Origin: Stegostoma tigrinum | Lineage: Eukaryota | NCBI RefSeq assembly: GCF_030684315.1 | Contig: NC_081398.1 | Span: forward strand, 6,490,385-6,543,012 | Direction of reading: 5' to 3' | Length of the DNA stretch: 52,628 nt | In this document: one piece after another, positions 1,944 to 36,988 of the stretch | Position numbering within the stretch: position 1 is the stretch's first letter | Layout: the number at the start of each line of letters is the position of its first letter | Notes under the pieces: generated by a model | The model's input: only the letters and a program-made list of their open reading frames with translations | The model's database searches: none | Told to the model about the DNA's origin: nothing | Translations under genes and position numbers: made by a program

Positions 1944-2306
1944 CTGATGCCTCAACTATCAAAACTGTTCCGTTCCCCTGTCCTCTCAGAATTGGGATGG
2001 GTCGCTCAATCTGAAGACGACAGTAATACGTCCCATCGTCTGACAGCTGGATGCTGTTGATGTGCAAGGTGATGAGCCCAGAGTTCCAATTGATGGAGAC
2101 ACTATTCCTGTGGCTTGTCCAGTTTTCAATACGATGGCATTTCTTCACCATATAGGAGAAGACAGTGTCATTATTTTTTTGCCATTCGATGGCAGCTTCG
2201 GAAATCTTCAGTGATGTGTTAAAGTTACAGTTTAGAGTTGCATCGGCTCCTTCTTTTACGGTGAGAGTTGAGGGAGATTGGATAATCAGGATTTCAGCAT
2301 GGGCAC
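1944..2306 (-). CDS. Gene B exon: VJ-type IgV domain, CD28/CTLA-4/CD28H(TMIGD2)/NKp30-like
   Basis: Acceptor ttcttctgtttgtacgtttcag|, donor TCAG|GTATTC, 363 nt, phase 1-1. Motifs IIQSP, EGADATLNC, IEWQK, ITLHINSIQLSDDGTYYC, and RLQIERPIPILRGQGNGTVLIV (Pro-containing F-G loop plus J-like GNGTxLxV). Confidence 0.9.
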
Positions 2307-2319
2307 CTGAAACGTACAA

Positions 2320-2760
2320 ACAGAAGAACATAAGAGATGGGAGCAGAAGTAGGCTGCCTCGAGTCTGCTCTGTCATTCAATAAGATCACAGCTGATCTTT
2401 TTTGTGGACTTAGCTCCCCTTACCCACCTGCTCACCATAACCCTCAATTCCTTCCCTGTTCAAAAATCTATCTAACAATAATTAATGAGATAGCCTCAAC
2501 TGCTTCACTGGGCAGGGAATTCCACAGATTCACAACCCTTTGGGTGAAAAAGTTCCTCCTCGACTCAGTCCTAAATCTGCTGCCCATTACGTTGAGGCTA
2601 TGCCTTCCCCCCAACTCCCCAAAGTTCTGGTTATACCCACCAATGGAAACAACCTCCCTATTTCCATCTGATCTATTCTCTTCAATATTTCATATGTTTC
2701 TACAAGAAACTCTTCCTCATTCTTCTAAATTCCAATGAGTATTGTCCCAGTGTGCTCAGT
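2320..2760 (-). mobile_element. CR1 3' end
   Basis: Antisense CR1 C-terminus and an atgttctt-type tail ending beside the V-exon acceptor. Confidence 0.75.
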
Positions 2761-2962
2761 CTCTCCAGATTGTGAAACATGTGGGGTTTGAAGAGAATCT
2801 TTGGGCACATTGCAAGTGTGTGAACCAACTGAGAGATAGCTAGCCACATCCAACATTCCATTTCTTGATCTGTAGGGATCCCAAATCTTTTTTTTTTGTC
2901 TTCTAGAAGGTTCCTGTTCCTGGAAAACCCATTTGAGTAGGGGCTTACATATCTTCACAACC

Positions 2963-3410
2963 ATTACGGACCAGACCAAACCCCCTCAAAACATTTTGAG
3001 AAGATAGATAATTTGAGAAACGTTTTTTCTTAATTTATAGGCAAGTGTAAGGTGTTGCATTCAGACACAATTGTTGAAGCAAAGCAGACAATATTCTTAC
3101 ACAATAGTTAAACTACAACAAAAGAGAAAGGAAATGAGAATAACTTAATTCTGTTGGAAAACTTAACAGAATCATAGATTATTTAACTACTAAACAGTAT
3201 CTGTTTCAATATAGTAACATCACATAAACCCAACCCTTGGCAAAGGCAAATTCAGTAAAATAGATTGTCTCACAGGCAGTTCTCCAGTCAGGGAGGAAAA
3301 AAAATTCAAGAGAAAACTCTGAGTGACAGAGACAGAGTAGCAGGGATTGATGTACTACAGCTTCCAAACACAGCTTCAAGACCCTAGCAATTGCTACTCA
3401 TTTAAAGATA
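2963..3410 (-). mobile_element. Solo LTR-like element, copy 1
   Basis: Its reverse complement is colinear with about 18750-19170 (ccttacacttgcct…gttttgagggg…tttggtctggtc). Confidence 0.55.
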
Positions 3411-3584
3411 CTGGTATGATGCTGAAATGAAGTCACTGTTGTCCACTCCCACTCCCTCACAAGAGAGACGACTGGTCGTTAGTCTCCGGCCTTCATGGTA
3501 ACCTCAGCTGTTGCGAGTATTGAACCCACACTGTAGCTGTCAGTCTGCATTGCAAACCAGCCAACTGAGCCCAGATGGATGAGA

Positions 3585-4165
3585 ATCATAGTGTCATACT
3601 ACACAGAAATAGACCCATTGGTCCAACCCGTCCACTGAGACGAGATATTCTAAATTAATCTAGTCCCATTTGCCTGCATTTGGCCCATATCGCTCTAAAC
3701 CCTTCTTATTCATGTAGCTGTCCAAATGTTGTCATTGTACTAGCCTCTACTACTTCCTCTGGCAGCTCATTTCATACGCGTTATAACTTGTTCTGCTTGA
3801 AAAGGTCACCCTTCAGGGCCCTTTTAAATCTTTCCCATTTCGTATTAAACCTATGCCTTCTAGTTTTGCACAGTGGGAAAAGACCTTGGCTGTTCACCCT
3901 CTCCATGCCCCTCATGATTTTATAAACCTCTATAAGGCCATCCGTCAGCCTCCAATGCACCAGGGAGAAGAGCCCAAACCTATCCAGCATTTCAAATCCT
4001 CCAGTCTCAGTAACAGCCTTGTAAAATATTTTTTGCATCCTTTCCAGTTTAATAACAGCCTTACTATAGCGGAGCAGCCAGAATTGTACACAGCACTCAC
4101 ATGCGGCCTCACCAATGTCTTGTAAGCGGTAACATGAAGTTTCAGCTCCTGTACTGCGCTCTCCA
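3585..4165 (-). mobile_element. CR1 3' fragment
   Basis: YKTLVRPH…CVQFW…LIEVYKIMRG. Confidence 0.8.
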
Positions 4166-4440
4166 TAACCCCCAGATCCCAAAGACAAAGGTCTGTCTGT
4201 CTCAGCTGTAAATGTACTCAGAGATGGAGCGTCCTCAAGTAAAGAAGCATTAGAGTAATGGAGTGACACAGCATGGAAACAGATCCTTCGGTCCAACTCG
4301 TCCATGCTGACCAGACATCCTAATCTGTTCTAGTCCCATTTTGCCAGCATTTGCACCACATCCATCTAAACCTTCATCTGGAGCTCTGGACCGCTCTAGC
4401 CATTGTCTGCCACTCAGAAAAAGAACCGTTTAATCCTAAA

Positions 4441-4615
4441 AGGAGCAGGAAAGCTGATGTTTCAGGTTGAGACCCTTCTTCAGACACTTTCTGAAGAAGG
4501 GTCCTATTCTGAAACATCAGCTTTCTTGCTTCTCTGATGCTGCCTGGCCTGCTATGTTCCCTCACCTCCACAAGGCGTGTTTTCTCAGAATCCAGCTTTG
4601 GCTGTTCTTACTATC
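4441..4615. mobile_element. Older palindromic PLE terminal fragment
   Basis: Inverted ctgaagaagggtc…gaaacatcag motifs at about 4455-4483 and 4491-4520. Confidence 0.6.
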
Positions 4616-4739
4616 TCTGTTTAATTCTACTGCTAGTTTCCAATTTACCAAACAGTTCTCTATCCATTTCATTACACCACCTCTGATCCCTTGCCCTCTA
4701 ATTCTGCATGCTATGTGAGGCCTTATTGAAAATCTGGGT

Positions 4740-5995
4740 AGGTTTACAACAAGACAGCAAAGATTTGAAATGGGCCTGTCGGGCAACTTTTTCACGCAGA
4801 GGGTGGCACATGTATGGAACGAGCTGCCAGGGGAAGTGGCTGAGGCTGGTACAATTACAACATTTAAAAGACATCTGGAAGAGTACATGAATGGGATGGG
4901 TTTACAGGGATCTGGGCCAAATGCTGGCAAATGGGACTAGATTTATTTAGGATATCAGTTTGTCATGGAAGTTTTGGACCAAAGGGTCTATTTCTGTGCT
5001 ATACATCTCTATGATTCTAACCCACATCTTCATCATCATATTTAGGCTAAAATTCCAGGTTTTTAATTCAGTTAAATATTTGCCATGGTAGGATTTGAAC
5101 CCGCGAACCCCTCAAATGGAAGAGTAAAGGCTAATGGTATTTCTAAAATTCAGATGAAAAGCAACATTTGATTTGATTTGTTTTATCGTTGTCACATGCA
5201 CCTGTATACAGTGAAAAATTTTGTTTTGCAAGCAGTACAGGCAGTTCCTAACAGACAAGGACATTCAGATCATAGGCAGAACGGGGCACACAAGGTTACA
5301 GGAGGTAAACAGAAGGTAGGCAGATGTAGAGCAACAAAATTTGAAGTTAGAGAGGTCCATTCAGCAGTCTAATATCAGCAAGGAAGAAGCTCTTCTTGAA
5401 CCTGTTGGGACATGTATTGAAGCTTCTGTTGCAACATGCAATGGGTTTCAGACCACAGACAATTTGGGATCGGAAATAAACACTCACCCAGCCAGCGACA
5501 CCCACGTCCTGCGAATGACCGAGGAGCCAAAGGGTCAGCACAAGGAGTTGATGACACAGGAGAGATTGAGTACACTAGGACTGTACTCATTGGAATTTAG
5601 AAAAATGCAGGATGCGATAATCTTACAGAAACATATAAAATTACAAAGAGAATAGATAAGATGGGAGCAAGGTTGCCTCCAATGGCGAGTGAAACTAGGA
5701 CTACACGGTACAGCCTCAAATAAGGGGAGAGCAGATTTAGGACCAAGCTGAGGAGGAGCTTGTTCACCCAAAGGATTGTGAATCTATGGAATTCCCTGCC
5801 CAGTGAAACAGGTGAGGCTGTTCCCCTAACTGTTTCAAGGCAAAGATAGATAGATTTTTGAACAGTAAAGGAATTTAGGGCTAGAGTGAGCAGGCAGGTA
5901 AGTGGAGCTGAGTCCACAAGAAAGATCTGTTCAGATCTTATTGAATGACAGAGCAGGCTCAAGGGGCTTACTCCTGCTCCTGTTTCTTATGTTCT
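4740..5995 (+). mobile_element. Two CR1 3' fragments (about 4740-5020 and 5550-5995) with another LINE 3' remnant between them
   Basis: FFTQRV…WNxLP region and ctatgattct / ttatgttct tails. The 5170-5440 segment resembles a Rex1/Babar-type 3' end on the minus strand (lower confidence). Confidence 0.65.
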
Positions 5996-6139
5996 GAGAC
6001 CAAGTTAGAATTTAAATCGATTGCGTTAAAAATCCACCAGTGACCCTGATGGGATTTGATTCTCCGTCAGCACAGAAATCGAACCTGGGCATTATCCACC
6101 CAACAGAGTACAGCTAGAATTCTCTCACTGCATTCCTAC

Positions 6140-6206
6140 CTTCAGGATCCCAGTCCAACAAGACGAGCAGGGCAGTGAAAGTACTTAAGACAGCTTCAGG
6201 CCCCAT
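6140..6206 (-). CDS. Gene B exon: signal peptide (MGPEAVLSTFTALLVLLDWDPE-G)
   Basis: Kozak-like AAAATGG at 6206, hydrophobic core, donor GAAG|GTAGGA after 6140. The 67 nt end in phase 1 and join in frame to the V exon at 2306 (…PEG-AHA/EILIIQ). Confidence 0.72.
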
Positions 6207-6256
6207 TTTGTCTGGCTTGGATGGTTATCTGCCTCTGTTTGTCTTCTCACTGCAGC

Positions 6257-6264
6257 TTTTTATG
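6257..6264 (-). promoter_or_regulatory. TATA-like element (CATAAAAA) upstream of the gene B ATG
   Basis: About 50 nt 5' of the leader ATG on the minus strand. Confidence 0.35.
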
Positions 6265-7100
6265 CTGTGCACTGTATCCTACCATTGACTGTAGTTGGAT
6301 AGGATGTGGGCAGGTTCCTTCAACTGATTGCTGCTGAGCATTAAGCATTTAGAGGTGAGATTTCACGTTAATTGAGTTTATGTTTTTTATTAATCTGTAA
6401 GGCTGGGACACCACATCCGGCCTTACATCTCACAGCACACATATGCGAGCTGGTGGTCACACTGTTGGTTTGCACAACCATGAGACAGTGGCTCTATAGG
6501 TATTCCCAGTGTCTACAGTCTTTATTGTCTCTGTTTGGCTCAGCTGGGAATTTTCTCAACGACGTCTATAGCCCATCCCTAATTAACCTCATGAGAAAGT
6601 GTTGGGGAGCCACTTTTATCAGGCAGTGCAACAAGGGAACACGCTTTTGGCAAGGATGTCACCAGATTCAAGTAATAGTATCTCGTTTTAGAGAACAAGG
6701 TGCGAGAGAGAATGCTAAAGTCCTTCGGTGTGGTTTGGATGAGTTGAGTGAGTGGGCAAATGCATGGCAGATGCAGCATAATGTGGATCAATGTGAGGTT
6801 ATCCACTTCTATATGACAAACACAGCTTCCAAAAATCAACAACAGATGGACGGTCCGGATTTGGCTCTTAATTCCACCTTTATTTAATTATCGAATTCAA
6901 ATTTTGCCATCTTCAAACACTATTGTTAAAATGGAAACAAAAGAAAGAAGAACTTCAAATAACCTAACAAAAACAGGAAGGAAGATTATTATCTGAATGG
7001 CTAACTGGACCCAGGGTGGCCATGTATCCCAAATGCTGAGAGTGTGCATTGAAGTTCAACTGGCAGTGAGGAAGGCAAATGGTATGTCAGTCCTTCAGAG

Positions 7101-7418
7101 AATAGAATCGAATCCCTACAGTGTGGAAATAGGCCCTTTGGCCCAACAGGTCCAGGCTGAACCTCCGAGAATCCCACCCAGACCCATCCCCCTTTCACCC
7201 ACCTAATCTATACCTCTCTGAGCACTATGAGCAATTTAGCACGGCCAAACCACCCTAACCTGCATATCTTTAGACTGTGGTAGGAAACTAGAGCACCCAG
7301 AGGAAACCCACGCAGACACAGGGGAATGTGCAAACTCCACACAGACAGTCACCTGAGGGTGGGATTGAACCCAGGTCCCTGGCGCTGTGAAGCAGCAGTG
7401 CTAACCACTGTGTCACCA
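7101..7418 (-). mobile_element. HE1-type V-SINE (tRNA head, V domain, CR1-like tail)
   Basis: Minus strand: ggtgacacagtggttagcactgctgc…gggttcaatccc…tgtgtggagtttgcacattc…ccacagtc…ttccacactgtagggattc. Confidence 0.85.
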
Positions 7419-7529
7419 TTTCACCCTTAGTAAGGGGCTCAAGGATATGAGTGGGGATGTCTTCCTGCAACTGTACAGGACGTTGGTGACAGCACATCAG
7501 GAGTATTGTCTTTAGTCCTGATGCTACAT

Positions 7530-10500
7530 CTGACTGGGAGCACTGTGTACAATCCGGTCTCTATTTCAACTGTTTACACTCTGATCTTTATATCTCAGCA
7601 GGAGCACTGTGTACTGTCCAGTCTCCATATCACACTGGGCGAGCACTGTTTACAATCTGGCCTGAATATTACACTGGGAGCACTCTGTACAATCCAATCT
7701 CTATATCACACTGGGGGAGCACTCTATGCAGTCCAGTCTCTATGTGACACTGGGGGAGCACTACGTACAGTCCAGTCTCTAGTCTGGTCTCTATGTCAGA
7801 CGAGGGGAGCAATGTGTACAGTCCAGTCTCTATATCACACTGGGGGAGCATTCTGTACAGTCTGGTCTCTATGTCAGACGAGGGTTGCAATGTGTACGGT
7901 CCAGTCTCTATATCACACTGGGGGAGCACTGTGTGCAGTCCAGTCTCTTTCTCACACTGGGGGAACACTCTGTACAGTCTGGTCTCTATATCAGACTAAG
8001 GGAGCACTGTATATAGTCCAGTCTATATATTACACTGGGGGAGCACTCTATACAGTCCAGACTCTATATCACACTGGGGAACACTGTGTACAATCCAGTC
8101 TCTATATCACACTGGGGAAGGACTGTGTACAATCCGGTCTCTATATCACACTGGGGGAGCACTGTGTACAATCCAGTCTCCGTATCGCACTGCGGGAGCA
8201 CTGTGTACAGTCCAGTCTGTATATCACACTGGGACCACTCAGTACAGTCTGGTCACTATATTACATTGGGAGCACTGTATATAGTCCAGTCTCACACTGG
8301 GGGAGCATTGTGTACAATCCGGTCTCTATATCACACTGGGGAGCACTGTGTACAGTCCGGTCTCTATATCACACTGGGGGAGCATTCTGTACAGTCTGGT
8401 CTCTATGTCAGACGAGGGGAGCAATGTGTACAGTCCAGTCTCTATATCACACTGGGGGAGCATTCTGTACAGTCTGGTCTCTATGTCAGACGAGGGGAGC
8501 AATGTGTACAGTCCAGTCTCTATATCACACTGGGGGAGCATTCTGTACAGTCTGGTCTCTATGTCAGACGAGGGTTGCAATGTGTACGGTCCAGTCTCTA
8601 TATCACACTGGGGGAGCACTGTGTGCAGTCCAGTCTCTTTCTCACACTGGGGGAACACTCTGTACAGTCTGGTCTCTATATCAGACTAAGGGAGCACTGT
8701 ATATAGTCCAGTCTATATATTACACTGGGGGAGCACTCTATACAGTCCAGTCTCTATATCACACTGGGGAACACTGTGTACAATCCAGTCTCTATATCAC
8801 ACTGGGGAAGGACTGTGTACAATCCGGTCTCTATATCACACTGGGGGAGCACTGTGTACAATCCAGTCTCCGTATCGCACTGCGGGAGCACTGTGTACAG
8901 TCCAGTCTGTATATCACACTGGGAGCACTCTGTACAGTCTGGTCACTATATTACATTGGGAGCACTGTATATAGTCCAGTCTCACACTGGGGGAGCATTG
9001 TGTACAATCCGGTCTCTATATCACACTGGGGAGCACTGTGTACAGTCCGGTCTCTATATCACACTGGGGGAGCATTCTGTACAGTCTGGTCTCTATGTCA
9101 GACGAGGGGAGCAATGCGTACAGTCCAGTCTCTATATCACACTGGGGGAGCATTCTGTACAGTCTGGTCTCTATGTCAGACGAGGGGAGCAATGTATACA
9201 GTCCCGTCTCTATATCACACTGGGGGAGCATTCTGTACAGTCTGGTCTCTATGTCAGACGAGGGGAGCTATGTATACAGTCCAGTCTCTATATCACACTG
9301 GGGGAGCATTCTGTACAGTCTGGTCTCTATGTCAGACGAGGGGAGCAATGTGTACAGTCCAGTCTCTATATCACACTGGGGGAGCACTGTGTGCAGTCCA
9401 GTCTCTTTCTCACACTGGGGGAACACTCTGTACAGTCTGGTCTCTATATCAGACTAAGGGAGCACTGTATATAGTCCAGTCTATATATCACACTGGGGGA
9501 GCACTGTGTACAATCCAGTCTCCGTATCACACTGCGGGAGCACTGTGTACAGTCCAGTCTATATATCACACTGGGGAGCACTGTGTACAGTCCGGTCTCT
9601 ATATCACACTGGGGGAGCATTCTGTACAGTCTGATCTCTATGTCAGACGAGGGGAGCAATGTGTACAGTTCAGTCTCTATATCACACTGGGGGAGCACTG
9701 TGTGCAGTCCAGTCTCTTTCTCACATTGGGGGAACACTCTGTACAGTCTGGTCTCTATATCAGACTAAGGGAGCACTGTATATAGTCCAGTCTATATATC
9801 ACACTGGGGGAGCACTGTGTACAATCCAGTCTCCGTATCACACTGCGGGAGCACTGTGTACAGTCCAGTCTATATATCACACTGGGACCACTCAGTACAG
9901 TCTGGTCTCTATATCAGACTAAGGGAGCACTGTATATAGTCCAGTCTATATATCACACTGGGGGAGCACTGTGTACAATCCAGTCTCTTTATCACACTGC
10001 GGAAGGACTGTGTACAATCCGGTCTCTATATCACACTGGGGGAGCACTGTGTACAATCCAGTCTCCGTATCGCACTGCAGGAGCACTGTGTACAGTCCAG
10101 TCTGTATATCACACTGGGACCACTCAGTACAGTCTGGTCACTATATTACATTGGGAGCACTGTATATAGTCCAGTCTCACACTGGGGGAGCACTGTGTAC
10201 AATCCGGTCTCTATATCACACTGGGGGAGCATTCTGTACAGTCTGGTCTCTATGTCAGACGAGGGGAGCAATGTGTACAGTCCAGTCTCTATATCACACT
10301 GGGGGAGCATTCTGTACAGTCTGGTCTCTATGTCAGACGAGGGGAGCAATGTGTACAGTCCAGTCTCTATATCACACTGGGGGAGCATTCTGTACAGTCT
10401 GGTCTCTATGTCAGACGAGGGGAGCTATGTATACAGTCCAGTCTCTATATCACACTGGGGGAGCATTCTGTACAGTCTGGTCTCTATGTCAGACGAGGGT

Positions 10501-11045
10501 TGCAATGTGTACGGTCCAGTCTCTATATCACACTGGGGGAGCACTGTGTGCAGTCCAGTCTCTTTCTCACACTGGGGGAACACTCTGTACAGTCTGGTCT
10601 CTATATCAGACTAAGGGAGCACTGTATATAGTCCAGTCTATATGTTACACTGGGGGAGCACTGTGTACAATCCAGTCTCCGTATCACACTGCGGGAGCAC
10701 TGTGTTCAGTCCAGTCTATATATCACACTGGGGGTGCACTGTGTACAGTCCAGTCTCTACACTACACTGGAAGCACTGTGTACAGTCCAGTCCTTCTATC
10801 ACACTGGGAGCACTCTGTACAGTCCAGTCTCTATATCACACTGGGGGAGCACTGTATATAATCCAGTCTCTATATCCCACTGGGGGAGCACTGTGTACAG
10901 TCCAGTCCCTATATTACACTGGGATCACTGTGTACAGTACAGTCTCTATATCCCACTGGGGGAGCACTGTCTGCAGTCCAGTCCCTATATCACACTGGGA
11001 TTACTGTGTACAGTCCAGTCTCTATGTCACACTTGGGTAATACTG
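7530..11045. repeat. 39-bp minisatellite, about 3.5 kb, with higher-order structure
   Basis: Unit about ACACTGGGGGAGCACTGTGTACAGTCCAGTCTCTATATC, with 78-bp dimers and a 690-bp block duplication (identical ORF starts at 8086/8776 and 8348/9038). Confidence 0.95.
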
Positions 11046-11334
11046 TGTATATGTTACCCAAAGGCAGTGCCAGATTCGAGGACTGTGATTCACTCACATT
11101 AACTGAGTTTTTTAAGCTGATTTTCTAGATTAGAGTTCTCTTCTCCATTACCCGGAATGCTGGGTGGATCCTGATAGACCTTAAATTAGGTTAGTCAAGA
11201 ACTAGAGACAGATGGTTCAGGAAAGTTATTCAGAACCACTTCTATACACGTAGAGTGGGCGATGTTTGGCACTCTCTTACACAAGGGGCAATGTTTGCTG
11301 AACGAGCTGTTAATTCATTGAACACAGTCATTGA

Positions 11335-12030
11335 AGAGGCTATGGCCTTGTGGTAGTATTGTTGGATGGTTAATCCAGAGGTGCGTAAAGTTCTGGCAAC
11401 CCAGGTTCAAATCCCCCCACAGATGATGCAGTTTGAATTTAAGACAAATCTGGAATTAAGACTGTAATGGTGACATGAATTGACTGCTGGAAAGCCCATC
11501 TGGTTCACTAATGAAATGTGATTGTGTTTGGCATGGCATCCACTCCCTCCACCACTGACGCTCAGTAGCAGCAGATGCACTGCAGAAATTCACCAAAGAT
11601 CCTTAGACAGCACCTTCTAAACCCCCAACCACTTCCATCTTGAACAACAAGGGCAGCGGGTACATGGGAACATGACCTTCAAGTTCTGATCATCCTGACT
11701 TGGAAAATATATCCTCATTCCTTCACTGAGTTATAATCCTGGATTACCCTCCCTGGTGGCATTATCTAGAGCACATGGACTGCAGTGGTTTAAGAAGGCA
11801 GCTCACCACTACCTTCTTCAGGGCAACTACTGATGGGCAATAAATGCTGACAGACAGTAATGCCCCCATCCCACAAATTAATCAAAAAACAACCTAACCT
11901 GCTCTAGCCTACATGTGACTCCTGACCTACAGCAATATTGTTGACTCTTAAATACCCTTGGGGCAATTAGCGATGGGTAATAAATGCTGGCCGAGCCAGT
12001 GATTCCCTCATTCTGTGAATGAGTTTTAAA
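11335..12030 (+). mobile_element. SINE and LINE 3' ends sharing the GGGCAATAAATGCTGG…CCCATCC tail
   Basis: The same tail recurs at about 1085-1250(+), 36760-36940(-), 40320-40590(-) and 47715-47895(+). Confidence 0.65.
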
Positions 12031-25109: not shown

Positions 25110-25457
25110 CCATGACTTTGACCCTGGAGCGGGCGCACATCTCCATGTCAGCGCCAACGTTCTCCAGGCAGCACTCGACGGCGCCCCCTGGCGGCGCGAA
25201 GGAGAAGCCCGGCACACGGAAGGTGGCATTTCCACCAGTTTCTTCCAGGATGAGGGCGTGGTTCTCAGACTGGGCAACCGCGGTGGTCCCCGCTTTCCAT
25301 AGCTCGAAGTGGCACCGGTCGGTGGAGTTACTGGACATGCACGTCACGCCCAGGCCCTCAGTGCCGACGCAGCGCAGGTTTAAGCCCCACTGGAAATTTA
25401 GCTCTTCCCCTTGTTTCGCCCTGAACTCGAAATGCACTGGCGAGAAAACATCAGTGT
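25110..25457 (-). CDS. Gene A exon: degenerate, Cys-rich V-like Ig domain 2
   Basis: Acceptor ttctctggtatttgcag|, donor ATGG|GTAAGT, 348 nt, phase 1-1, open frame, CpG-rich unique sequence among repeats. Strand-like motifs FRAKQGEELNFQW, GNATFRV, GGAVECC, MCARSRVKV. Confidence 0.8.
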
Positions 25458-27593: not shown

Positions 27594-28275
27594 TTCACTG
27601 CCCTATCTACTTTTGCAAGGAACTATGTAGCTGTACCCCCAGGTCTCTCTGTTTGACAATACTCCCCAGGGTCCTATCATTAACTGTGTAAGTCCTGCCC
27701 TGGTTTGTCTCACCAAAATGTAACATCTCGCATTTATCTAAGAAACACCGGCCACTCCTCGGCCCACTGGCCCAGTTGTTCAAGATCCTATTGTGCTCTT
27801 AGACAACCTTCTTCACGTTCCATTATGCCACCAACTTTGGTGTCATGCGCAAACTTACTAACCATATCTCCTATAATTTTATTTAAAATAGCTTACATGA
27901 ATGACAGACAACAGTGGACTCAGAACTGATCCTTACAGCATCCTGCTAGCCACAGTCCCCCAAGCCGAAAAACAGCCTTCGACAGCAACACTCTGTCTCC
28001 TACCATCAAGCCAATTTTGTATCCAAATGGCAATCCCTGGATTCCATATGATATAGCCGTTCTGACCAGTCTACCATGCAGGACCTTGTCAAAGGTCTTC
28101 CTAAAGTTCACATGGACAATGTCCACCACTCTGCCTTCATCAATTTTCTTCATCGCTTCTTCAAAAAACTCAGTCAGGTTTGTGAGACACTAAGCCATGC
28201 TGACTATCTCTATTCAGTCCTTGCCTTTCCAAATACCTGTAGATCCTGTCTCTCAGAATGTCCTCCAATGACTTA

Positions 28276-29638
28276 ATAAAAACTGAAAGAACTGCGGATG
28301 TTGTAAATCAGGAACAAAACCAATGTTGCTGGAAAAGCTCAGCAGGTCTGGCAGAATCTGTGAAGGGAAAACAGAGTTAACATTTCGGGTCCAGTGACCC
28401 TTGGGTAAACGTCAGTTGATATGCAGAAAATCGAGAGGTGGGTGGGGTAGGGAGTAAATGATATGATAGAGCCCAAAGAGAGAGAAAGACAGTTGGACAG
28501 AATAAGGAGTTGCTAACGATCAGGCTGGGGGGGAGGGGGGTGGTGGGGTGGGGGGGGGGGGGGTCAGTAGTTGTTTATGGGGACTGTTAGTGACTAACAA
28601 CGGAGGGTGTGTAATGGCAGGCTGTGGTAACAAGGCCTGGTGTGTGGGGTGGTGAGCTGGGACATGGGGGAGCTTAGGCCCTAAAATTATTGAACTCAAT
28701 ATTGAGTCCGGAGGGCTGTAGGGTCCCCAAGCGGAAAATGAGGTGTTGTTCCTCCAGCCTGTGTTGTGCTTCACTGGAACACTGCAGCAAGCCAGAGACA
28801 GAGATGTTGGCCAGGGAGCAGGGTGGTGTGTTAAAGTGGCAGGCAACAGGTAGTTCAGGGTCGTTTTTGCGAGCAGAATGTAGATGTTCTGCAAAGCAGT
28901 CGCCAAGTCTACGCTTTGTTTCCCCAATGTAAAGGAGACCACATTGTGAGCAGCGAATGCAGGAGGCTAGATTCTGGGAAGTGCAGATGAAGTGTTGCTT
29001 CACCTGGAAGGTATGTTTGGGCCCTTGGATAGTGGGGAGGGAGGTAAATGGGCAGGTGTTACATATTCACTGGTTACAGGGGAAGGCGCAGCAGGGCTGT
29101 GGGGAGGTGTTGGGGGTGAAGGAAGTGTGGACCAGGGTGTCCCAGAGGGAACAGTCTCTGAGGAAGGTGGACAAGGGAGGGGAGCGGAATATGTGTCTGG
29201 CGGTGGCATCTTGCTGGAGGTGGCGGAAATGGTGTCTGCTGATCTGGATGTGGATGCTGGTGGGATGGTAGGAGAGGATACGGAGAGATGGAGATGGGGA
29301 ATCCTTGGTTGAGGAAGAAGGTGGGCTTTTTGTTTTCCTGAAGAAAAGTCTCGACCTGAAACATCAGCCTTCCTGCTCCTCTAATGCTGCTTGGCCTGCT
29401 GTGTTCACCCAGCTCTGCTCTTTGTCTGTGTAACTGTCTTTCTCTTTCTTTGGGCTCTATCCTATCATTTACTCCTTACCCCATCCACCTCTCTATTTTC
29501 TGCATATAAATTGACATTTACCCAGCCACCATCAGTTCTGAGGAAGGGTCACTGGGCCTGAAACGTAATCTCTGTTTTTCCCTTCACAGATGCTGCCAGG
29601 CCTGCTCAGCTTTTCCAGCAACATTGTTTTTGTTCTTT
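28276..29638 (-). mobile_element. 5'-truncated PLE with inverted terminal segment, inserted into a CR1
   Basis: GIY-YIG ORF 28674-29003. Terminal segment at about 28280-28500 and inverted at about 29430-29638. 10-bp TSD CAATGACTTA at 28266-28275 and 29639-29648. Confidence 0.85.
29538..29567 (+). ncRNA. Hammerhead motif of a second PLE family
   Basis: CUGAGGA-AGGGUCACUGGGCCU-GAAAC-GUA. Confidence 0.6.
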
Positions 29639-30918
29639 CAATGACTTACCCACTAGTGACGTCAGCCCATCAGTCTATAGTTCCCTGGCTTTTCCTGGCA
29701 GCCTTTCTTAAACGATTGCACAACAGTAGCCATCCTCCAGTCTTCTGGCACGTCAGCTGTGGCTATCAATGATACAATGCAACTCTTCCTTCGCTTCCCA
29801 CAATGTCCTGGTATACCTGTGATCAGGCCTCAGGGGTTTATCTGCCCTTATGCATTTTGAGACCTCCGGCACCTCCTCTTCTGTAAGGTGGACCCTTTTC
29901 ATGACTTCACTATGGATTTCCCCAAGTTTCCGAGCTTTCATGCCTTTCTCCACCGTAAATATTGACGCAAAACATTTGCTTAGGATCTCACCCATCTCGT
30001 GTGGTTCCACACATCAATGGCTTCATTGATCTTTAAGGGGCTTCATTGTAAGGATTCTATGATGGCAGAAGGAGAGATTGAGTTGGTTGAGACAGTATTC
30101 CCAGGAGTTTAGAAGAATTGAGGGGGGAGCCTCACAGAAACCTATAAAATTCTAACAGGTCAGATGCAGGAAAGGTGCTCCTGATGGTGGTAGACCTCAG
30201 GGCTAGAGGTTAAGTTTAAGGGTGAGGGGGCAAATAATTTAGGACTGAGATGAAGAGAAATGTCTTCACTGAGAGAACAGTGAACCTGTGGAATACTCTG
30301 CCACAGAAAGCAGCTGAGGCCAAAATATATATAACACGGTATGGATCTGGATGAACACAGCAAGCCAGGCAGCATCAGAGAAGCAGGAAAACTGATGTTT
30401 CGGGTCAGGAGTCTCATTGAGACAAATCGGATTCTTAAGGGTTAATGCTGAGAGGATGTTTCCCCTCATGAGAGAGTCTAGGACCAGAAGGGGCAGATTC
30501 AGGATAAGACTGAGACGAGGAGGAATTTCAGCTCTCAAAGGGTCGGGACTGTGAGGAGTTACACTGAGGAACTGGATACTCAGAGGGCCAGTGCTGAGGG
30601 AGTGCTGAACTGTTGGAGGGTCAGTTCTGAAGGAGCGGACACTGTCGGAAGGTCAGCGCTGAGGGAGCACTGCATTGTCAGAGGGCCATTTATGAAGAAG
30701 CATCCTCACCCAAAGCGTCAGCTTTCCTGCTCCTCTGATGCTGCCTGGTCAGCTGTGTTCCTCCAGCTCCACAGTGCGTTATCTCTGACTCCAGTATCGG
30801 CAGTAGCCACAATCATATCGAATGGTGGAGCAGGCTGGAGGGGCCGAACGGCCTGCTCCTGTTCCTACTTTCTATGTTTCTAATCAACACTAAATCCCTC
30901 ATCTTTAAGTCTCCTTAC

Positions 30919-31272
30919 CTTGTTTGACGCCCAATGAAACAGTGGAGCAAATCAGACTCTTCTGGTGGTTCAAGCGGACATAACAGAAGTAGGTGCCGTT
31001 GTCATTCAGCATGACGTGCTTGAGGGTAAGGGCTGCCTCGTTCGTCCTGCGCCAGTCGGGGTGTAACATGGTCCTGTTCTTGTACCAGGCGTTCTGGCCA
31101 TCACCAATGGAGTCTTCTGTCTCCACATGAAACACCAACTCGGCGTCAGTCGAGCGTTTCTGCCAGATGACACTGGCAGACTCAGACACACCAGAAAAGT
31201 GGCACGGGAGGGTCACAGAGTCACCACATGTAGCCGTTACTTCCACTGCCTCATTTCTGCACATGGTCTGTC
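30919..31272 (-). CDS. Gene A exon: B7/butyrophilin-family-type IgV domain
   Basis: Acceptor tctgtttgtcctgtag|, donor CAAG|GTAAGG, 354 nt, phase 1-1, no stops. V-set motifs GDSVTLPC, VIWQK, QxxxYKNRTxL (CD80 has YKNRT), AALTLKHVxxxDNGTYFC, TVSLGV. Extra Cys in the A, A' and G strands. Confidence 0.9.
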
Positions 31273-31499
31273 CTACAGGACAAACAGACTTCAGTTGTGA
31301 CATTCCAACATCCCCTCAGGCAGCTTGAGAGGCAATCTCATTGAAGCATACCAGATTATTAAAGCCTAAAGCTGAGTAGATGTTTCCCCTCATGGGAAAG
31401 TCTGCGACCAGCCTCAGGATAAGACTGAGATGAAGAGGAATTTCATCTCTCAAAGGATCAGGAGTGTGAGGAATTACACTGAGGAGGAACTGCACACTT

Positions 31500-34400
31500 G
31501 GAGGGCCAGTGCTGAGGGAATGTCACACTGTCAGATGATCAGCTGTAAGGGAGCGCCGCACTGTCGGAGGGTCAGTGCTGAGGGAGTGCCGCACTGTCGG
31601 AGGGTCAGTGCTGAGGGAGTGCCGCACTGTCGGAGGGTCAGTGCTGAGGGAGTGCCGCACTGTCGGAGGGTCAGTGCTGAGGGAGTGCCGCACTGTCGGA
31701 GGGTCAGTGCTGAGGGAGTGCCGCACTGTCGGAGGGTCAGTGCTGAGGGAGTGCCGCACTGTTGGAGGGTCAGTGCAGAGGGAGCGCCGCACTGTCGGAG
31801 GGTCAGTGCCGAGGGAGCGCCGCACTGTGATAGGGTCAGTGCCGAGGGAGCGCCGCACTGTCGGAGTGTCAGTGCTGAGGGAGTGCGCAATGTCAAAGGG
31901 TCAGTGTTGAGGGAACACCGCACTGTCAGGGGGTCAGCACTGAGGGAGCGCCGCACTGTCAGGGGGTCAGCACTGAGGGAACACCGCACTGTCAGGGGGT
32001 CAGTGTTGAGGGAACACCGCACTGTCAGGGGGTCAGCACTGAGGGAGCGCCGCACTGTCAGGGGGTCAGCACTGAGGGAGTGCCGCACTGTCGGAGGGTC
32101 AGTGCTGAGGGAGTGCCGCACTGCTGGAGGGTCAGTGCAGAGGGGGCGCCGCACTGTCGGAGGGTCAGTGCCGAGGGAGCGCCGCACTGTGATAGGGTCA
32201 GTGCCGAGGGAGCGCCGCACTGTGATAGGGTCAGTGCCGAGGGAGCGCCGCACTGTCGGAGTGTCAGTGCTGAGGGAGTGCGCAATGTCAAAGGGTCAGT
32301 GTTGAGGGAACACCGCACTGTCAGGGGGTCAGCACTGAGGGAGCGCCGCACTGTCAGGGGGTCAGCACTGAGGGAACACCGCACTGTCAGGGGGTCAGCG
32401 CTGAGGGAACACCGCACTGTCAGGGGGTCAGCACTGAGGGAACGCCGCACTGTCAGGGGGTCAGCGCTGAGGGAACACTGCACTGCCCAAGGGTCAGCAC
32501 TGAGGGAACACTGCACTGTCAGAGGGTCAGTGCTGAGGGAACGCCGCACTGTCAGGGGGTCAGCACTGAGGGAACACCGCACTGTCAGGGGGTCAGCACT
32601 GAGGGAGCGCCGCACTGTCAGGGGGTCAGCACTGAGGGAGTGCCGCACTGTCGGAGGGTCAGTGCTGAGGGAGTGCCGCACTGCTGGAGGGTCAGTGCAG
32701 AGGGGGCGCCGCACTGTCGGAGGGTCAGTGCCGAGGGAGCGCCGCACTGTGATAGGGTCAGTGCCGAGGGAGCGCCGCACTGTGATAGGGTCAGTGCCGA
32801 GGGAGCGCCGCACTGTCGGAGTGTCAGTGCTGAGGGAGTGCGCAATGTCAAAGGGTCAGTGTTGAGGGAACACCGCACTGTCAGGGGGTCAGCACTGAGG
32901 GAGCGCCGCACTGTCAGGGGGTCAGCACTGAGGGAACACCGCACTGTCAGGGGGTCAGCGCTGAGGGAACACCGCACTGTCAGGGGGTCAGCACTGAGGG
33001 AACGCCGCACTGTCAGGGGGTCAGCGCTGAGGGAACACTGCACTGCCCAAGGGTCAGCACTGAGGGAACACTGCACTGTCAGAGGGTCAGTGCTGAGGGA
33101 ACGCCGCACTGTCAGGGGGTCAGCACTGAGGGAACACCGCACTGTCAGGGGGTCAGCACTGAGGGAGCGCCGCACTGTCAGGGGGTCAGCGCTGAGGGAA
33201 CACCGCACTGTCAGGGGGTCAGCGCTGAGGGAACACTGCACTGTCAGGGGGTCAGCACTGAGGGAACGCCGCACTGTCAGGGGGTCAGCACTGAGGGAAC
33301 ACCGCACTGTCAGGGGGTCAGCGCTGAGGGAACACTGCACTGTCAGGGGGTCAGCACTGAGGGAACGCCGCACTGTCAGGGGGTCAGCGCTGAGGAACAT
33401 CGCACCGTCAGAGGGTCAGCGTTGAGGGAACATTGCACTGTCAGGGGGTCAGTGTTGAGGGAACGCCGCACTGTCAGAGGGTCAGCGCTGAGGGAACACT
33501 GCACTGCCCAAGGGTCAGTACTGAGGGAACGCCGCACTGTCAGAGGGTCAGTGCTGAGGGAACGCCGCACTGTCAGGGGGTCAGCGCTGAGGGAACGCCG
33601 CACTGTCAGAGGGTCAGCGCTGAGGGAACACTGCACTGCCCAAGGGTCAGTACTGAGGGAACACTGCACTGTCCAAGGGTCAGTACTGAGGGAACTCCGC
33701 ACTGTCAGAGGATCAGCGCTGAGGGAACACCGCACTGTCAGGGGGTCAGCGGTGAGGGAACACTGCACTGTCAGGGGGTCAGCACTGAGGGAACGCCGCA
33801 CTGCCCGAGGGTCAGCGCTGAGGAACATCGCACCGTCAGAGGGTCAGCATTGAGGGAACATTGCACTGTCAGGGGGTCAGTGTTGAGGGAACGCCGCACT
33901 GTCAGAGGGTCAGCGCTGAGGGAACGCTGCACTGTCAGAGGGTCAGCGCTGAGGGAACACTGCACTGCCCAAGGGTCAGTACTGAGGGAACGCCGCACTG
34001 TCAGAGGGTCAGTGCTGAGGGAACGCCGCACTGTCAGGGGGTCAGCGCTGAGGGAACGCCGCACTGTCAGAGGGTCAGCGCTGAGGGAACACTGCACTGC
34101 CCAAGGGTCAGTACTGAGGGAACACTGCACTGCCCAAGGGTCAGTACTGAGGGAACTCCGCACTGTCAGAGGGTCAGTGCTGAGGGAACGCCGCACTGTC
34201 AGAGGGTCAGTGCTGAGGGAACGCCGCACTGTCAGGGGGTCAGCGCTGAGGGAACGCCGCACTGTCAGAGGGTCAGCGCTGAGGGAACGCCGCACTGTCA
34301 GAGGGTCAGCGCTGAGGGAACACTGCACTGCCCAAGGGTCAGCACTGAGGGAACACTGCACTGTCAGAGGGTCAGTGCTGAGGGAACGCCGCACTGTCAG

Positions 34401-34925
34401 AGGGTCAGCGCTGAGGAACATCGCACCGTCAGAGGGTCAGTGCTGAGGGAACGCTGCACTGTCAGGGGGTCAGCGCTGAGGAACATCGCACCGTCAGAGG
34501 GTCAGCGCTGAGGGAACGCCGCACTGTCAGAGGGTCAGCGCTGAGGAACATCGCACCGTCAGAGGGTCAGCGTTGAGGGAACGCTGCACTGTCAGGGGGT
34601 CAGCGCTGAGGGAACGCCGCACTGTCAGAGGGTCAGCGCTGAGGGAACACTGCACTGCCCAAGGGTCAGCACTGAGGGAACGCTGCACTATCAGAGGGTC
34701 AGTGCTGAGGGAACGCCGCACTGTCAGAGGGTCAGCGCTGAGGGAACATTGTACTGTCAGAGGGTCAGCGCTGAGGGAACACTGCACTGTCAGGGGGTCA
34801 GCGCTGAGGGAATGCCGCACTGTCAGAGGGTCAACACTGAGGGAATGCTGCACCATCAGAGAGTCAGCGCTGAAGGAATGCCGCACTGTCGGAGGGTCAG
34901 TGCTGAGGGTGTGCGCAATGTCAGA
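31500..34925. repeat. 33-bp GC-rich minisatellite, about 3.4 kb, in the leader-V intron of gene A
   Basis: Unit about GCACTGTCAGAGGGTCAGTGCTGAGGGAACGCC, with 560-bp (32080/32640) and 428-bp (33433/33861) higher-order duplications. Confidence 0.95.
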
Positions 34926-35025
34926 AAAGTCACATTGTGAATTAGATGCTGAATGCAGGCTTGATGCTTAGGCAGTTGCAGGAAATGACTTCTGAGACAG
35001 GATGGAGCAGTTGGGAGCATACTCA

Positions 35026-35217
35026 GAGATAGTAGGAACTGCAGATGCTGGAGAATCTGAGGTAACAAGGTGTAGAGCTGGATGAATACAGCAGGCCAAG
35101 CAACATCAGAGCAGGAAGACTGACGTTTCGGGCCTAGACCCTCCTGAAACGTCAGCCTTCCTGCTCCTCGGATGCTGCTTGGCCTGCTGTGTTCATCCAG
35201 CTCTACACCTTGTTATC
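35026..35217. mobile_element. Short fold-back PLE terminal insertion
   Basis: PLE end plus inverted arm. TSD TGGGA(G/T)CATACTCA at 35012-35025 and 35218-35231. Confidence 0.75.
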
Positions 35218-36043
35218 TGGGATCATACTCACTTGACGATGAAAGAATGAGGGCGCGCGTCTCACAGTAAACACAGAAAGGATATTCCCAATGATTTGGG
35301 GGGGAGGCGGTTCAGAACCAGGCATTGGCTGACCAAAGGGGACAGGGTTAGCACTGAGATGCAGAGAGTGGCGATCTTGTGGAATTCTCTGCCACTGAAA
35401 GCAGCCTGACAAAAATGTTGTGTTTTCTATAAAGCATTAAATACAGCTCTTAGGGCTGGAAGGACCAAAGCGTATGGGTTATAGTGAAAATAGGTGATTG
35501 AGTTTGATGATCACATCGACAGGCAGAGCAGGCTCGAGCTGGCCAGGAGCATTTGATGGTGGACAGTGTTGAGAGAGCTTTACTCTCTCACTAACCCCAT
35601 GCTGTCCCTGGCTTGGGAGTGTTTGATCGGGGTCACTGTAGAGGTGCCTCAGCACTTGCACTAAAGGGGCTGTTTCTCCCTCCATCCCCCTCTCTGTCCT
35701 TGTGTCTCTCCCTCATTCTCTCCCCCCTCCTCCCTCTCTCCCCTCCTCTCACTCTCTCTCCTTCCTCCGTCTCTCCCCTTCTCCTTCTCAATCACTCTCG
35801 TGCGCCCCCCCCCACCTCTGTGTCACTTTGTCTCCCTCTATCTCTCTTCCACTCTATCTCTCTCTTCTCCCTGCCTCTCTGTCGAGCCCTTCTCCCTCTC
35901 TGCCTGTTTCTTGCCCCCTCCCCTCTCACTCACCGTCTCTCCTTCTCTGTCTCTCTCTCTCCCTCTCACTCGCTCACGCTCGCTATCTGTCTCTCCTTCT
36001 CACTCTCCCTCTCTCACTCTCTCTCTGATTATGTCTTTCTTAC

Positions 36044-36116
36044 CTATTTCAAACATATTTGTCATCCAGAACAGCTTTAACAGAATGTGAAGGCGGGAAC
36101 CAGCGTTGTAGTCCAT
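36044..36116 (-). CDS. Gene A exon: signal peptide (MDYNAGSRLHILLKLFWMTNMFEI-G)
   Basis: Acceptor tcttattttcag| at 36132, ATG at 36116, donor ATAG|GTAAGA after 36044. The 73 nt end in phase 1 and join in frame to the IgV exon at 31272. Hydrophobic core LHILLKLFWM. Confidence 0.75.
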
Positions 36117-36988
36117 GTGTATATCTCCAGGCCTGAAAATAAGACATTTTTGACAGGTTGTGCTCCGAAACATTGGAAATTGGATCAAGCATAGGCTGCT
36201 CCTACTGTCAGGACATGGATCGCCCCATGACCCTTTATCTGCCACTCTCTCCGCCCCCGCGCCCATCACACTCAGTTCCTTTGTCTGCCGATAAAAACAC
36301 TTCCCATGTCTCAGGAATGGGCGCACAGCAAGATCCTACACACACCGACACGAACGCAAGCAGGTGTTTCTTCTGCGTGGGGATGTTGATCACAGATCGC
36401 ATCTTGGAACGTGCCAACTTTTACGGGCCATGCTGTCTCAGGACCTACATGCAGGTCTGACCAGGCCGAGAGGGGCGAGAATTGCCCGCAAGGGGGGCAT
36501 GCACGATGGGTAAACAACGGGGAAAATCTGAAGGATATCAAGACCCAACCCCTCTCGGATCTGGTTCATGGGGCAAGAAAATGGTTGGAAAGATGTTGCT
36601 TGCAATTGAAGGCAGTCAGATCAGCTACGATCACATTGACTGTTGGAGCAGAGGTGATTGGCTGAAGGGCCCAGTTCTCCTTCTGCATCTTATGGTAGTG
36701 TCCCAGGATTCCCTTAATTGGGAATGATCCAGGGTTTGAGGAAGTCCAGGTCTTATTTTCCATTCATTCACAGATGTGAGCATCAGTGGCTGGGCCCAGC
36801 ATTTATTACCCATCCCTAATTGCCCTGAGGGCAGTTAAGAGTTAAACCCATTGCTGTGGGTCTAGAGTCATGTGTGGGCCAGACTGGGTAAGGTTGGCAG
36901 ATTTCCTTCCCTAAACATCATTAGTGAACCAAATAGAATGTTCCCAAACACAGAAGGATTGGTTAGTAAGTTTGCAGCTGACTCTAAT

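Follow-up and report, generated by a model that had tools for sequence, protein, structure and literature searches.

Two immunoglobulin-superfamily genes in tandem

The window, that is, the whole stretch of DNA analysed, comprises 52,628 nt of the forward strand of Stegostoma tigrinum (zebra shark; GCF_030684315.1, NC_081398.1, positions 6,490,385-6,543,012). Two genes of the immunoglobulin superfamily (IgSF), designated A and B, are arranged in tandem within it, head-to-tail on the minus strand, with A upstream of B; 8,190 bp separate the polyadenylation signal of A from the initiation codon of B. The original prediction had placed two such genes here, about 8.2 kb apart and each with its own phase-1 leader exon, and all of this is borne out: the AATAAA at 14396 and the ATG at 6206 are both present, and every exon junction read in the two genes is phase 1. 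The features are as follows:

36044..36116, minus strand: gene A exon 1, ATG and leader peptide with a phase-1 end (tblastn with residues 1-26 of XP_059498545.1; donor GAAATAG/gtaa)
30919..31272, minus strand: gene A exon 2, B7/butyrophilin-type V domain (Pfam V-set, E 5.4e-12; matches XP_059498545.1)
25110..25457, minus strand: gene A exon 3, second, degenerate Ig-like domain (matches XP_059498545.1)
14616..14704, minus strand: gene A exon 4, short hydrophilic spacer, 14-residue hydrophobic C-terminus and TGA (sequence reading)
14396..14401, minus strand: gene A polyadenylation signal AATAAA, about 215 nt past the TGA (14616-14618)
7601..11049, no strand: minisatellite in the A-B intergenic spacer, with about 89 copies of a 39-bp unit (Tandem Repeats Finder)
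6140..6206, minus strand: gene B exon 1, ATG (6206) and leader peptide, phase-1 end before GT (matches the whale and bamboo shark leaders)
1944..2306, minus strand: gene B exon 2, a VJ-type V domain whose FG loop reads ERPIPILRGQGNGT and whose G strand is J-like (splice sites; Pfam V-set)

Gene A consists of four phase-1 exons and encodes a product of about 287 aa, identical to the NCBI model XP_059498545.1 (P0004). The exons correspond to this model save at the splice boundaries, where the tblastn alignment runs into the intron; in exon 2, the lone mismatch is the first aligned residue, which lies upstream of the acceptor. The ATG of the model, at 36116, lies slightly inside the limit of 36132 originally given. 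Orthologues are present in Rhincodon, Chiloscyllium, Hemiscyllium, Heterodontus, Cetorhinus and Heptranchias, with identities of 82% to the whale shark copy, 59% to that of the bamboo shark and 37% to that of the horn shark. Gene A is a real, conserved gene with a B7/butyrophilin-type V domain.

In gene B, exon 2 is bounded by an acceptor (...tttcag/GT) and a donor (...CATCAG/gt), and its 120-aa translation, a V-set domain according to Pfam (E 2.8e-14), contains the F-G string CRLQIERPIPILRGQGNGTVLIV, just as had been quoted for this gene. In tblastn, the orthologues from the whale shark and bamboo shark align with both exons (E 4e-62 and 1e-7); exon 2 is 78% identical to whale shark LOC125487770, and gene B shows identities of 78% to the whale shark copy, 61% to that of the bamboo shark and 45% to that of the horn shark. 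No further exons of gene B were found in positions 1-1943 of the window. In the zebra shark, the exons for the stalk, transmembrane segment and tail fall outside the window, past its left edge. A zebra shark protein for gene B is absent from both protein searches, although that of gene A was found, so gene B may be unannotated or defective in this species.

The introns and the A-B spacer are rich in retroelements and minisatellites, the remainder of the window holds repeats only, and scanning it with profiles in all six frames revealed no additional Ig exons of either family. The orthologues of A and B share a scaffold in the whale shark (11,054,923 bp), the whitespotted bamboo shark (C. plagiosum; 9,987,384 bp) and the horn shark (Heterodontus; 19,484,767 bp). 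The two genes are, therefore, kept on one scaffold across two shark orders, in four sharks including the zebra shark; the linkage in the other three is at the scaffold level (10-19 Mb), and the 8.2-kb spacing was read in the zebra shark. Its recurrence in three further sharks argues that the linkage is not an artefact of the zebra shark assembly, as the original prediction would require. One orthologue per species surfaced for gene A, and likewise for gene B, which suggests that neither belongs to a large expanding family.

The domains of gene A

The V domain of gene A bears the sequences WQK, YKNRT.L and DNGTYFC, together with extra conserved cysteines; WQK, YKNRT.L and DxGTYxC had been singled out beforehand as B7-family hallmarks, and they are indeed present in a domain that Pfam recognizes as a V-set. 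When a profile of six orthologues was compared with solved structures, the matches included CD276 (1e-9), BTN3A (4.5e-9) and VTCN1 (1e-7), and further MOG, ICOSL, PD-L1 and BTN2A1, the whole set spanning 1e-9 to 1e-5; a single-sequence search of solved structures agrees. The protein atlas lists BTN1A1-like and VTCN1 clusters for this gene. Additionally, the V domain matches a coelacanth protein that NCBI names HHLA2 (95.7% hhalign probability, 31% identity), although such automatic names are unreliable in fish.

The second domain is degenerate: its B-strand Cys is replaced by Trp in most sharks, ECC is found at the F strand, the zebra shark copy of exon 3 has no Pfam match, and a local profile gives a weak match to Ig V repeats. 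In the Heptranchias orthologue, Cys/Trp/Cys is retained in this domain and a second V-set stretch was found. Neither the C1-set nor the C2-set family of Pfam matches a C-type domain in four orthologues. The C-terminal end is conserved in all six orthologues, with 14 hydrophobic residues following a hydrophilic spacer of small residues and, in most of them, only 0-2 residues beyond; this signal most likely receives a GPI anchor.

Gene A shares with the B7 family an N-terminal B7/butyrophilin-type IgV and an organization of one exon per domain with phase-1 junctions, but it is not a canonical B7: there is neither a membrane-proximal C-type domain nor a type I transmembrane segment with a cytoplasmic tail, and the end is GPI-like. 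The description of gene A as B7-like thus holds for the V domain, through its matches to CD276, BTN3A and VTCN1, but not for the canonical B7 plan. B7-H4 (VTCN1) and B7-H3 (CD276), which are among the best solved relatives of the V domain, both have a true C-type second domain, whereas that of gene A is degenerate and V-like. B7-H4 is of similar length to the gene A product, has a hydrophobic end with almost no tail, and was first described as GPI-linked. The GPI-like end also sets gene A apart from HHLA2 (B7H7), the transmembrane ligand of CD28H, and from B7H6, the NKp30 ligand, which is transmembrane with a long tail. Human HHLA2 has a V-C-V arrangement, and the human genes for CD28H and HHLA2 are on different chromosomes.

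The probable receptor encoded by gene B

The F-G region of gene B appears to align gaplessly to human CTLA-4. The published description of the CD28-family motif agrees with this alignment, the proline spacing being that of CTLA-4 and CD28H, and it defines the family by a single IgV, an FG-loop proline motif, an optional GxG in the G strand and a tail tyrosine motif (PMC11599192). Gene B has the single-IgV architecture and the FG proline motif, and a tail tyrosine motif is seen in its orthologues. The F-G segment ERPxPIxxGxGNGT is invariant in five sharks; over the F-to-G stretch, strands included, 18/27 positions are invariant compared with 14/93 elsewhere, and there is a complete J-like motif, QGNGTVLIV. 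The orthologues P0001, P0163, P0164 and P0168 have a leader, V domain, transmembrane segment and tail, and in P0001, P0163 and P0168 the single V is followed by a stalk, which is devoid of cysteine. None of the four transmembrane segments carries a charged residue, and the tails are long, with 24-25 residues separating an ITIM from a second tyrosine motif (VLYSVI and IYSRI in the bamboo shark C. plagiosum; VLYNEI, VYSEI and SLYTQI in the horn shark Heterodontus).

Among described receptors, CD28HL3 offers a close parallel in the loop: it is a single V in which the FG proline stands at the same distance from the F-strand Cys and is followed by GNG. Within the CDR3 of gene B, YYCRLQIE-R-P, an Arg takes the place of the I/A/V/L in the CD28HL3 motif YxCxxxxx[I/A/V/L]P, and the PxPILRxxGNG after this Arg matches bichir CD28HL3 (...IPSPILRRSGNG in the motif table of Quiniou et al. 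2024, PMC11599192, against ...RPIPILRGQGNG in gene B). The CD28HL3 tail has an ITIM and then an ITSM-like second motif, V.YS[ED][VI], the counterpart of which is seen in the gene B orthologues. CD28HL3 is known from bichir, gar, sterlet, cyprinids and catfishes, was not detected in cartilaginous fish, and has prkab1b, pla2g1b and tmem233 as marker genes (Quiniou et al. 2024, PMC11599192).

In CD28H (TMIGD2), the E-I-P-(P-P) loop is spaced like E-R-P-I-P in gene B, but CD28H carries a YxN activating-type motif and no ITIMs, unlike the gene B orthologues. CTLA-4 and CD28 share with gene B the 14 residues from the F-strand Cys to GNGT, prolines at 7 and 9, the GxG bulge and an exon plan of leader, V, transmembrane segment and tail, whereas MYPPPY, the stalk cysteine and YxxM are absent from gene B, an ITIM tail being found instead; moreover, the homologues of CD28/CTLA4 in sharks are located elsewhere, in a three-gene cassette of their own. 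PD-1 is likewise a single V with no stalk cysteine and with an ITIM and a second tyrosine motif some 25 residues apart, but its FG loop is without prolines, and shark PD-1 belongs to a different synteny group; nor is PD-1 known to have a J-like GxG. NKp30 (NCR3) resembles gene B in its VJ-type V domain and G-strand GNGT, and its ligand is of the B7 type, but its FG loop is shorter and proline-free, it has a charged transmembrane residue and its tail is short. As GxGNGT is common to NKp30 and CTLA-4, it cannot discriminate between them. The NKp30 and B7H6 genes are not neighbours in the species studied; the co-evolution of NKp30 with B7H6, from sharks to mammals, was reportedly proposed by Flajnik et al. 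in 2012.

We infer that gene B belongs to the wider CD28 family as a type I receptor with one V(J) domain, and its loop motif and ITIM tail would place it nearest to the CD28H/CD28HL3 branch. Its original description as CD28/CTLA-4-like is, therefore, apt for the CD28-family-type FG loop and the J-like G strand, but not for an assignment to CD28/CTLA-4 proper.

A possible ligand-receptor pair

A and B are new lineage members of known families and, beyond the gene structures, domain families, orthologues and same-scaffold linkage that were observed, their arrangement is suggestive of ligand-receptor pairing. The locus holds two real, shark-conserved IgSF genes in tandem, and we consider it probable, overall, that A encodes a GPI-anchored protein with a B7/butyrophilin-type V domain and B an inhibitory receptor of the CD28-family type. 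The product of gene A would be a GPI-anchored surface molecule of the ligand type, with no signalling tail of its own, and the invariant ERPxP FG loop of gene B is likely to be where that receptor contacts its ligand, by analogy with MYPPPY in CTLA-4. The ITIM and the second tyrosine motif, by virtue of their 24-25 residue separation, point to the recruitment of SHP-type phosphatases and would thereby deliver an inhibitory signal.

Gene A is the obvious first candidate as the ligand of gene B, albeit a doubtful one. It is similarly doubtful that the two form a cognate, co-inherited pair, in which GPI-anchored A would engage the ERPxP loop and B would signal through its ITIM, with tight linkage keeping matching alleles together, perhaps as in the rodent Nkrp1-Clr lectin pairs. 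The genes are head-to-tail neighbours with a common scaffold in three other sharks, and V domains of the CD28 type usually have B7-type V domains as their ligands. Both genes evolve fast and at similar rates (82/59/37% against 78/61/45%), although this says little because the four species are related. In the complex test, gene A and the V domain of gene B scored 0.41 against 0.00 for the best control (runs agreeing in at least 90% of contacts, partner pLDDT at least 84), an outcome that the test itself rates as weak support, but the controls were unrelated non-Ig proteins, which leaves generic V-V pairing as a possible source of the score, and a pass at 0.60 or below is more often wrong than right unless pairing is likely beforehand. 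Indeed, scores in this range came from only 5/78 solved complexes and from every one of the 4 mismatches to pass, and 7/44 neighbouring gene pairs passed a blind trial. A somewhat better prospect, at a little short of even chances, is that the adjacency is incidental, the two genes having separate partners in an Ig-rich region that grows by V-domain gene birth and death; linkage in the other species is resolved to 10-19 Mb scaffolds, and the introns and spacer are full of retroelements and minisatellites. Against this, chance sharing of such a scaffold would be rare across three further multi-gigabase genomes, and the single orthologue per species speaks against a large expanding family. The full proposal, that A and B form an inhibitory checkpoint of cognate partners inherited as a unit since before the split of carpet and bullhead sharks, with B the counterpart of CD28HL3, is unlikely. 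Were it true, this would be the first case of physical linkage between a B7-type ligand and a CD28-type receptor, lending support to a side-by-side origin of the ligand and receptor families, and gene B would be a cartilaginous-fish CD28HL3 counterpart missed by the 2024 family survey (PMC11599192).

Gene B might instead lie outside the CD28 family, as another VJ-type receptor, inhibitory NKp30-like or NITR-like, with a convergent proline loop. This has perhaps one chance in four in its favour: among solved structures, its V domain is nearest to antibody VL and TCR V-alpha, the top 60 include no chain of the CD28 family, Pfam assigns it to generic Ig families only (V-set_2 being unmatched), and the sole non-shark match is a weak one to a coelacanth VJ protein. 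Its J-like motif is complete, and an N-glycosylated GNGT also occurs in NKp30, while NITRs are built from a VJ domain and a tail with an ITIM. However, gene B is single-copy, unlike the NITR clusters, and differs from NKp30 in its uncharged transmembrane segment and longer tail. Furthermore, its nearest named clusters in the protein atlas are PD-1, CTLA-4-like and CD28 (0.95-0.97), and the E-x-P-x-P spacing and GNG position match the CD28H/CD28HL table (PMC11599192). Decay or silencing of gene B in the zebra shark, which would make the pair a relic there, is improbable. The failure of either search to find its protein is consistent with decay, as is the presence of Tyr and Trp at the positions of two C'-C'' cysteines shared by the whale and bamboo sharks, alongside one new unpaired Cys; but the two exons that lie in the window have open frames and good splice sites, the core V residues are complete and the FG loop is intact.

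Organization of the locus and its conservation among sharks

The window is repeat-rich, with a G+C content of ~46% and one run of 155 N, and it holds two Ig-superfamily genes, both on the minus strand: gene A, a four-exon B7/butyrophilin-like gene, and gene B, a candidate CD28-type receptor gene whose leader and V exons lie within the window. Gene B starts 8,190 bp downstream of gene A, and the splice phase is 1 at all junctions of both genes. The features are as follows:

36044-36116, minus strand: gene A leader exon, with the ATG at 36116
30919-31272, minus strand: gene A V domain exon
25110-25457, minus strand: gene A second-domain exon
14616-14704, minus strand: gene A C-terminal exon, with the TGA at its end
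14396-14401, minus strand: gene A AATAAA
6140-6206, minus strand: gene B leader exon, with the ATG at 6206
1944-2306, minus strand: gene B V exon

Six-frame profile scans of the window (634-702, a CT-rich stretch, being masked) gave no further exons of either Ig family, and no stalk, transmembrane or tail exons of gene B were found within 1-1943. There are no other host genes in the window; the introns and the spacer between the two genes contain open reading frames of retroelement origin as well as a pair of 3.4-kb minisatellites.

The original prediction had posited a linked pair comprising a B7-like ligand and a CD28/CTLA-4-like receptor, and the linkage itself extends beyond this one assembly. 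The orthologues of genes A and B share scaffolds in three further species, as resolved to the whole-scaffold level: in each case, both are on a scaffold of identical size, namely, 11,054,923 bp in whale shark (LOC125487807 and LOC125487770), 9,987,384 bp in Chiloscyllium plagiosum (LOC122544428 and LOC122544332) and 19,484,767 bp in Heterodontus (XP_067879825 and XP_067879962). Chance sharing of such scaffolds would be rare in three multi-gigabase genomes, and the synteny is, therefore, real; moreover, its presence in these species indicates that it predates the split between carpet sharks and bullhead sharks.

Relationships of the two genes

The NCBI protein XP_059498545.1 ('uncharacterized protein LOC125448660', Stegostoma tigrinum), which was used for the gene A searches, is an exact translation of the four exons by tblastn, the sole differences being boundary residues where tblastn runs on into the introns. 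Judged by its sequence relatives, the V domain is a B7/butyrophilin-type domain: in a single-sequence search, the best solved relatives were CD276 (B7-H3), BTN3A1-3, VTCN1 (B7-H4), BTN2A1 and MOG, and a profile built from six shark orthologues returned CD276 (1e-9), BTN3A (4.5e-9) and VTCN1 (1e-7), followed by MOG, ICOSL and PD-L1. Additionally, a coelacanth protein named HHLA2 by NCBI matches gene A with 31% identity and an hhalign probability of 95.7%, and the nearest clusters in the protein atlas are BTN1A1-like and VTCN1, with the GPI-anchored Thy-1 also listed.

The second domain is more unusual, and in zebra shark it has no Pfam match. The position of the B-strand cysteine is occupied by tryptophan in most sharks and by arginine in Cetorhinus, and the F strand carries a conserved ECC in sharks other than Heptranchias; the canonical Cys/Trp/Cys set is seen in Heptranchias only, where there is also a second V-set stretch. 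This stretch, together with weak matches of the second-domain profile to whole V repeats of fish proteins, marks it as a degenerate Ig domain that is not of the C type. The C-terminus consists of a hydrophilic spacer of small residues followed by a final stretch of 14 hydrophobic residues, an arrangement that is conserved in all orthologues and that fits a putative GPI-anchor signal. The AlphaFold model of gene A, made from a shallow alignment, is poor, with a mean pLDDT of 51. As a B7 molecule, gene A bears out the expected V domain of B7/butyrophilin type and departs from expectation in having neither a C-type domain nor a transmembrane tail; two B7-defining features are thus missing, and the most fitting label is that of a B7/butyrophilin-like variant.

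Orthologues of gene A, all of them named 'uncharacterized' in the database, are 82% identical to the zebra shark protein in Rhincodon (whale shark), ~58% identical in Chiloscyllium and Hemiscyllium, and 32-37% identical over the whole protein (41-46% within the V domain) in Heterodontus, Cetorhinus and Heptranchias. Their occurrence in all these sharks makes the gene older than the galeomorph/squalomorph split, and it is evidently a fast-evolving gene. Two of these species have alternative isoforms, which differ at the C-terminus in Heptranchias and at the N-terminus in Heterodontus.

For gene B, CD28-family proteins are recognized by their single V domain, an FG loop bearing a proline motif, an optional GxG and a tail bearing a tyrosine motif (PMC11599192), and at the motif level gene B has the features of the family. 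The motif table of the same 2024 survey gives E-I-P-(P-P) for CD28H and its paralogues (PMC11599192), with the same spacing as in the gene B loop; likewise, the loop of bichir CD28HL3, ...IPSPILRRSGNG (PMC11599192), can be set against ...RPIPILRGQGNG in gene B. CD28HL3 is the family member whose tail is of the ITIM/ITSM type, and in cartilaginous fish the survey's authors report no detection of it (PMC11599192). The supplements contain neither ERPIP, ERPVP nor GNGTVL, and neither Stegostoma nor Rhincodon (PMC11599192), which places the gene B lineage outside the set surveyed.

Both visible exons of zebra shark gene B are intact. Its V exon is present in four sequencing runs, none of them recorded as RNA, and neither protein search returned a zebra shark protein for it; the gene may be unannotated or, less likely, defective. 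Orthologues were found in whale shark (LOC125487770, 266 aa; 78% V-domain identity), in Chiloscyllium punctatum and C. plagiosum (61%), in Heterodontus (326 aa; 45%) and, as a partial sequence, in Scyliorhinus torazame (43%). Comparison of these five sharks shows no variation at 18 of the 27 F-to-G strand positions, including E-R-P-x-P-I-x-x-G-x-G-N-G-T, as against 14 of 93 elsewhere; the FG loop is thus the most constrained part, as would be expected of a ligand-contact loop. The transmembrane segment of the orthologues is without charge, and the tails carry tyrosine motifs: VLYSVI and, 25 residues on, IYSRI in C. plagiosum; VLYNEI and, 24 residues on, VYSEI in Heterodontus, together with SLYTQI.

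The V domain is of the VJ type, with a complete J-like G strand (QGNGTVLIV). When gene B was queried exon by exon in PDB sequence searches, antibodies and T-cell receptors appeared throughout the best 60 matches, the top relatives being antibody VL and TCR V-alpha; in the protein atlas, the clusters nearest to the Heterodontus orthologue are PD-1, CTLA-4-like and CD28, at 0.95-0.97. The AlphaFold model of the V domain, likewise from a shallow alignment, is also poor, with a mean pLDDT of 44. An origin among NKp30-like or NITR-like receptors is a minority prospect. Based on its motifs and a language-model lead, we instead read gene B as a putative inhibitory receptor belonging to the CD28 family in its wider sense, with motifs closest to those of CD28H and CD28HL3; on this reading, the predicted CD28-family character would hold, with CD28H/CD28HL3 nearer than CTLA-4. 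Two further candidates were set aside: PD-1 by the J-like G strand and the loop prolines, shark PD-1 also being in a different synteny group, and UrIg because this is a VJ-C1 molecule.

In the C'-C'' region of gene B (2080-2150), whale shark and the bamboo sharks have two cysteines in common that could form an extra disulfide. In zebra shark, these are replaced by tyrosine and tryptophan, with a new single cysteine between them; Heterodontus has one cysteine only, at another position, and Scyliorhinus keeps the first and has its second three residues earlier than in the whale and bamboo sharks.

Possible pairing of the two products

On paper, the locus resembles a checkpoint pair of the B7/CD28 type, in which a tail-less ligand-type molecule adjoins an ITIM receptor, and we hypothesize that A and B could be a functional pair. 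In predicted-complex scoring, the gene A and gene B V domains gave 0.41, 0.40 and 0.41, whereas the highest of three controls reached 0.00, a verdict of 'weak support', with contact agreement between runs of at least 90% and a partner pLDDT of at least 84. Among 78 solved complexes, 51 attained the mark, as did 2 of 108 mismatched pairs; scores of 0.60 or less belonged to just 5 of these solved complexes and to all four mismatches that passed, and, by the tool's own statement, a pass at this score is wrong in more cases than it is right, save where the guess was already a likely one. Moreover, the controls were unrelated non-Ig proteins, which leaves room for generic V-V pairing learned by the model from B7/CTLA-4 or VH/VL complexes of solved structure. 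Overall, we consider cognate binding between A and B rather improbable.

The CD28/B7 checkpoint system is central in lymphocyte control, and the reconstruction of its early history is still in progress; an ancestral complex common to the two families has been proposed by others. [quoted passage not shown] The nine receptor members were defined only in 2024 (PMC11599192), and the locus would add to them an ITIM-bearing, CD28H-like lineage that is absent from that survey, as well as a B7-like protein with a putative GPI anchor and an unusual second domain. Genes A and B are new lineage members, and their arrangement is a variant of a known system; the searchable literature yielded no description of a B7-type and a CD28-type gene in physical linkage. 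The conserved linkage points to a concrete ligand candidate for gene B that is cheap to test. If A and B do bind, the locus would exemplify the retention of receptor and ligand together on one chromosome, and it would bear on the proposed origin of both families from a single ancestral immune gene complex; if they do not, the gene-rich family has simply gained a further two lineage-specific Ig genes, which would be ordinary.

Repeats in the introns and spacer

The minisatellite at 7601-11049 (3.4 kb; 39-bp unit, ~89 copies, 78% matches) takes up much of the spacer between the gene A poly(A) signal and the start of gene B, and gives rise to long but spurious reading frames on each strand. The other, at 31501-34909 (3.4 kb; 33-bp unit, ~103 copies, ~64% G+C, with higher-order periods of 66/99 bp), sits in the first intron of gene A, directly upstream of the V exon. 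The third intron of gene A contains a 481-aa LINE-type reverse-transcriptase reading frame (22494-23939, plus strand), at the start of which is a perfect 65-bp tandem duplication (22430-22559). The 155-N assembly gap (48599-48753) is flanked by CA/TC-rich simple repeats and a 49-bp tandem array (49560-50085). Finally, a 667-aa open reading frame at 42800-44800 (minus strand), with a reverse-transcriptase-like region and a C-terminal GIY-YIG-like stretch (LYIGETKRRLGD.FAEH), resembles Penelope-like elements; two further fragments of this C-terminal part occur at 28677-29066 (minus strand) and 47019-47366 (plus strand), one of them within a gene A intron.
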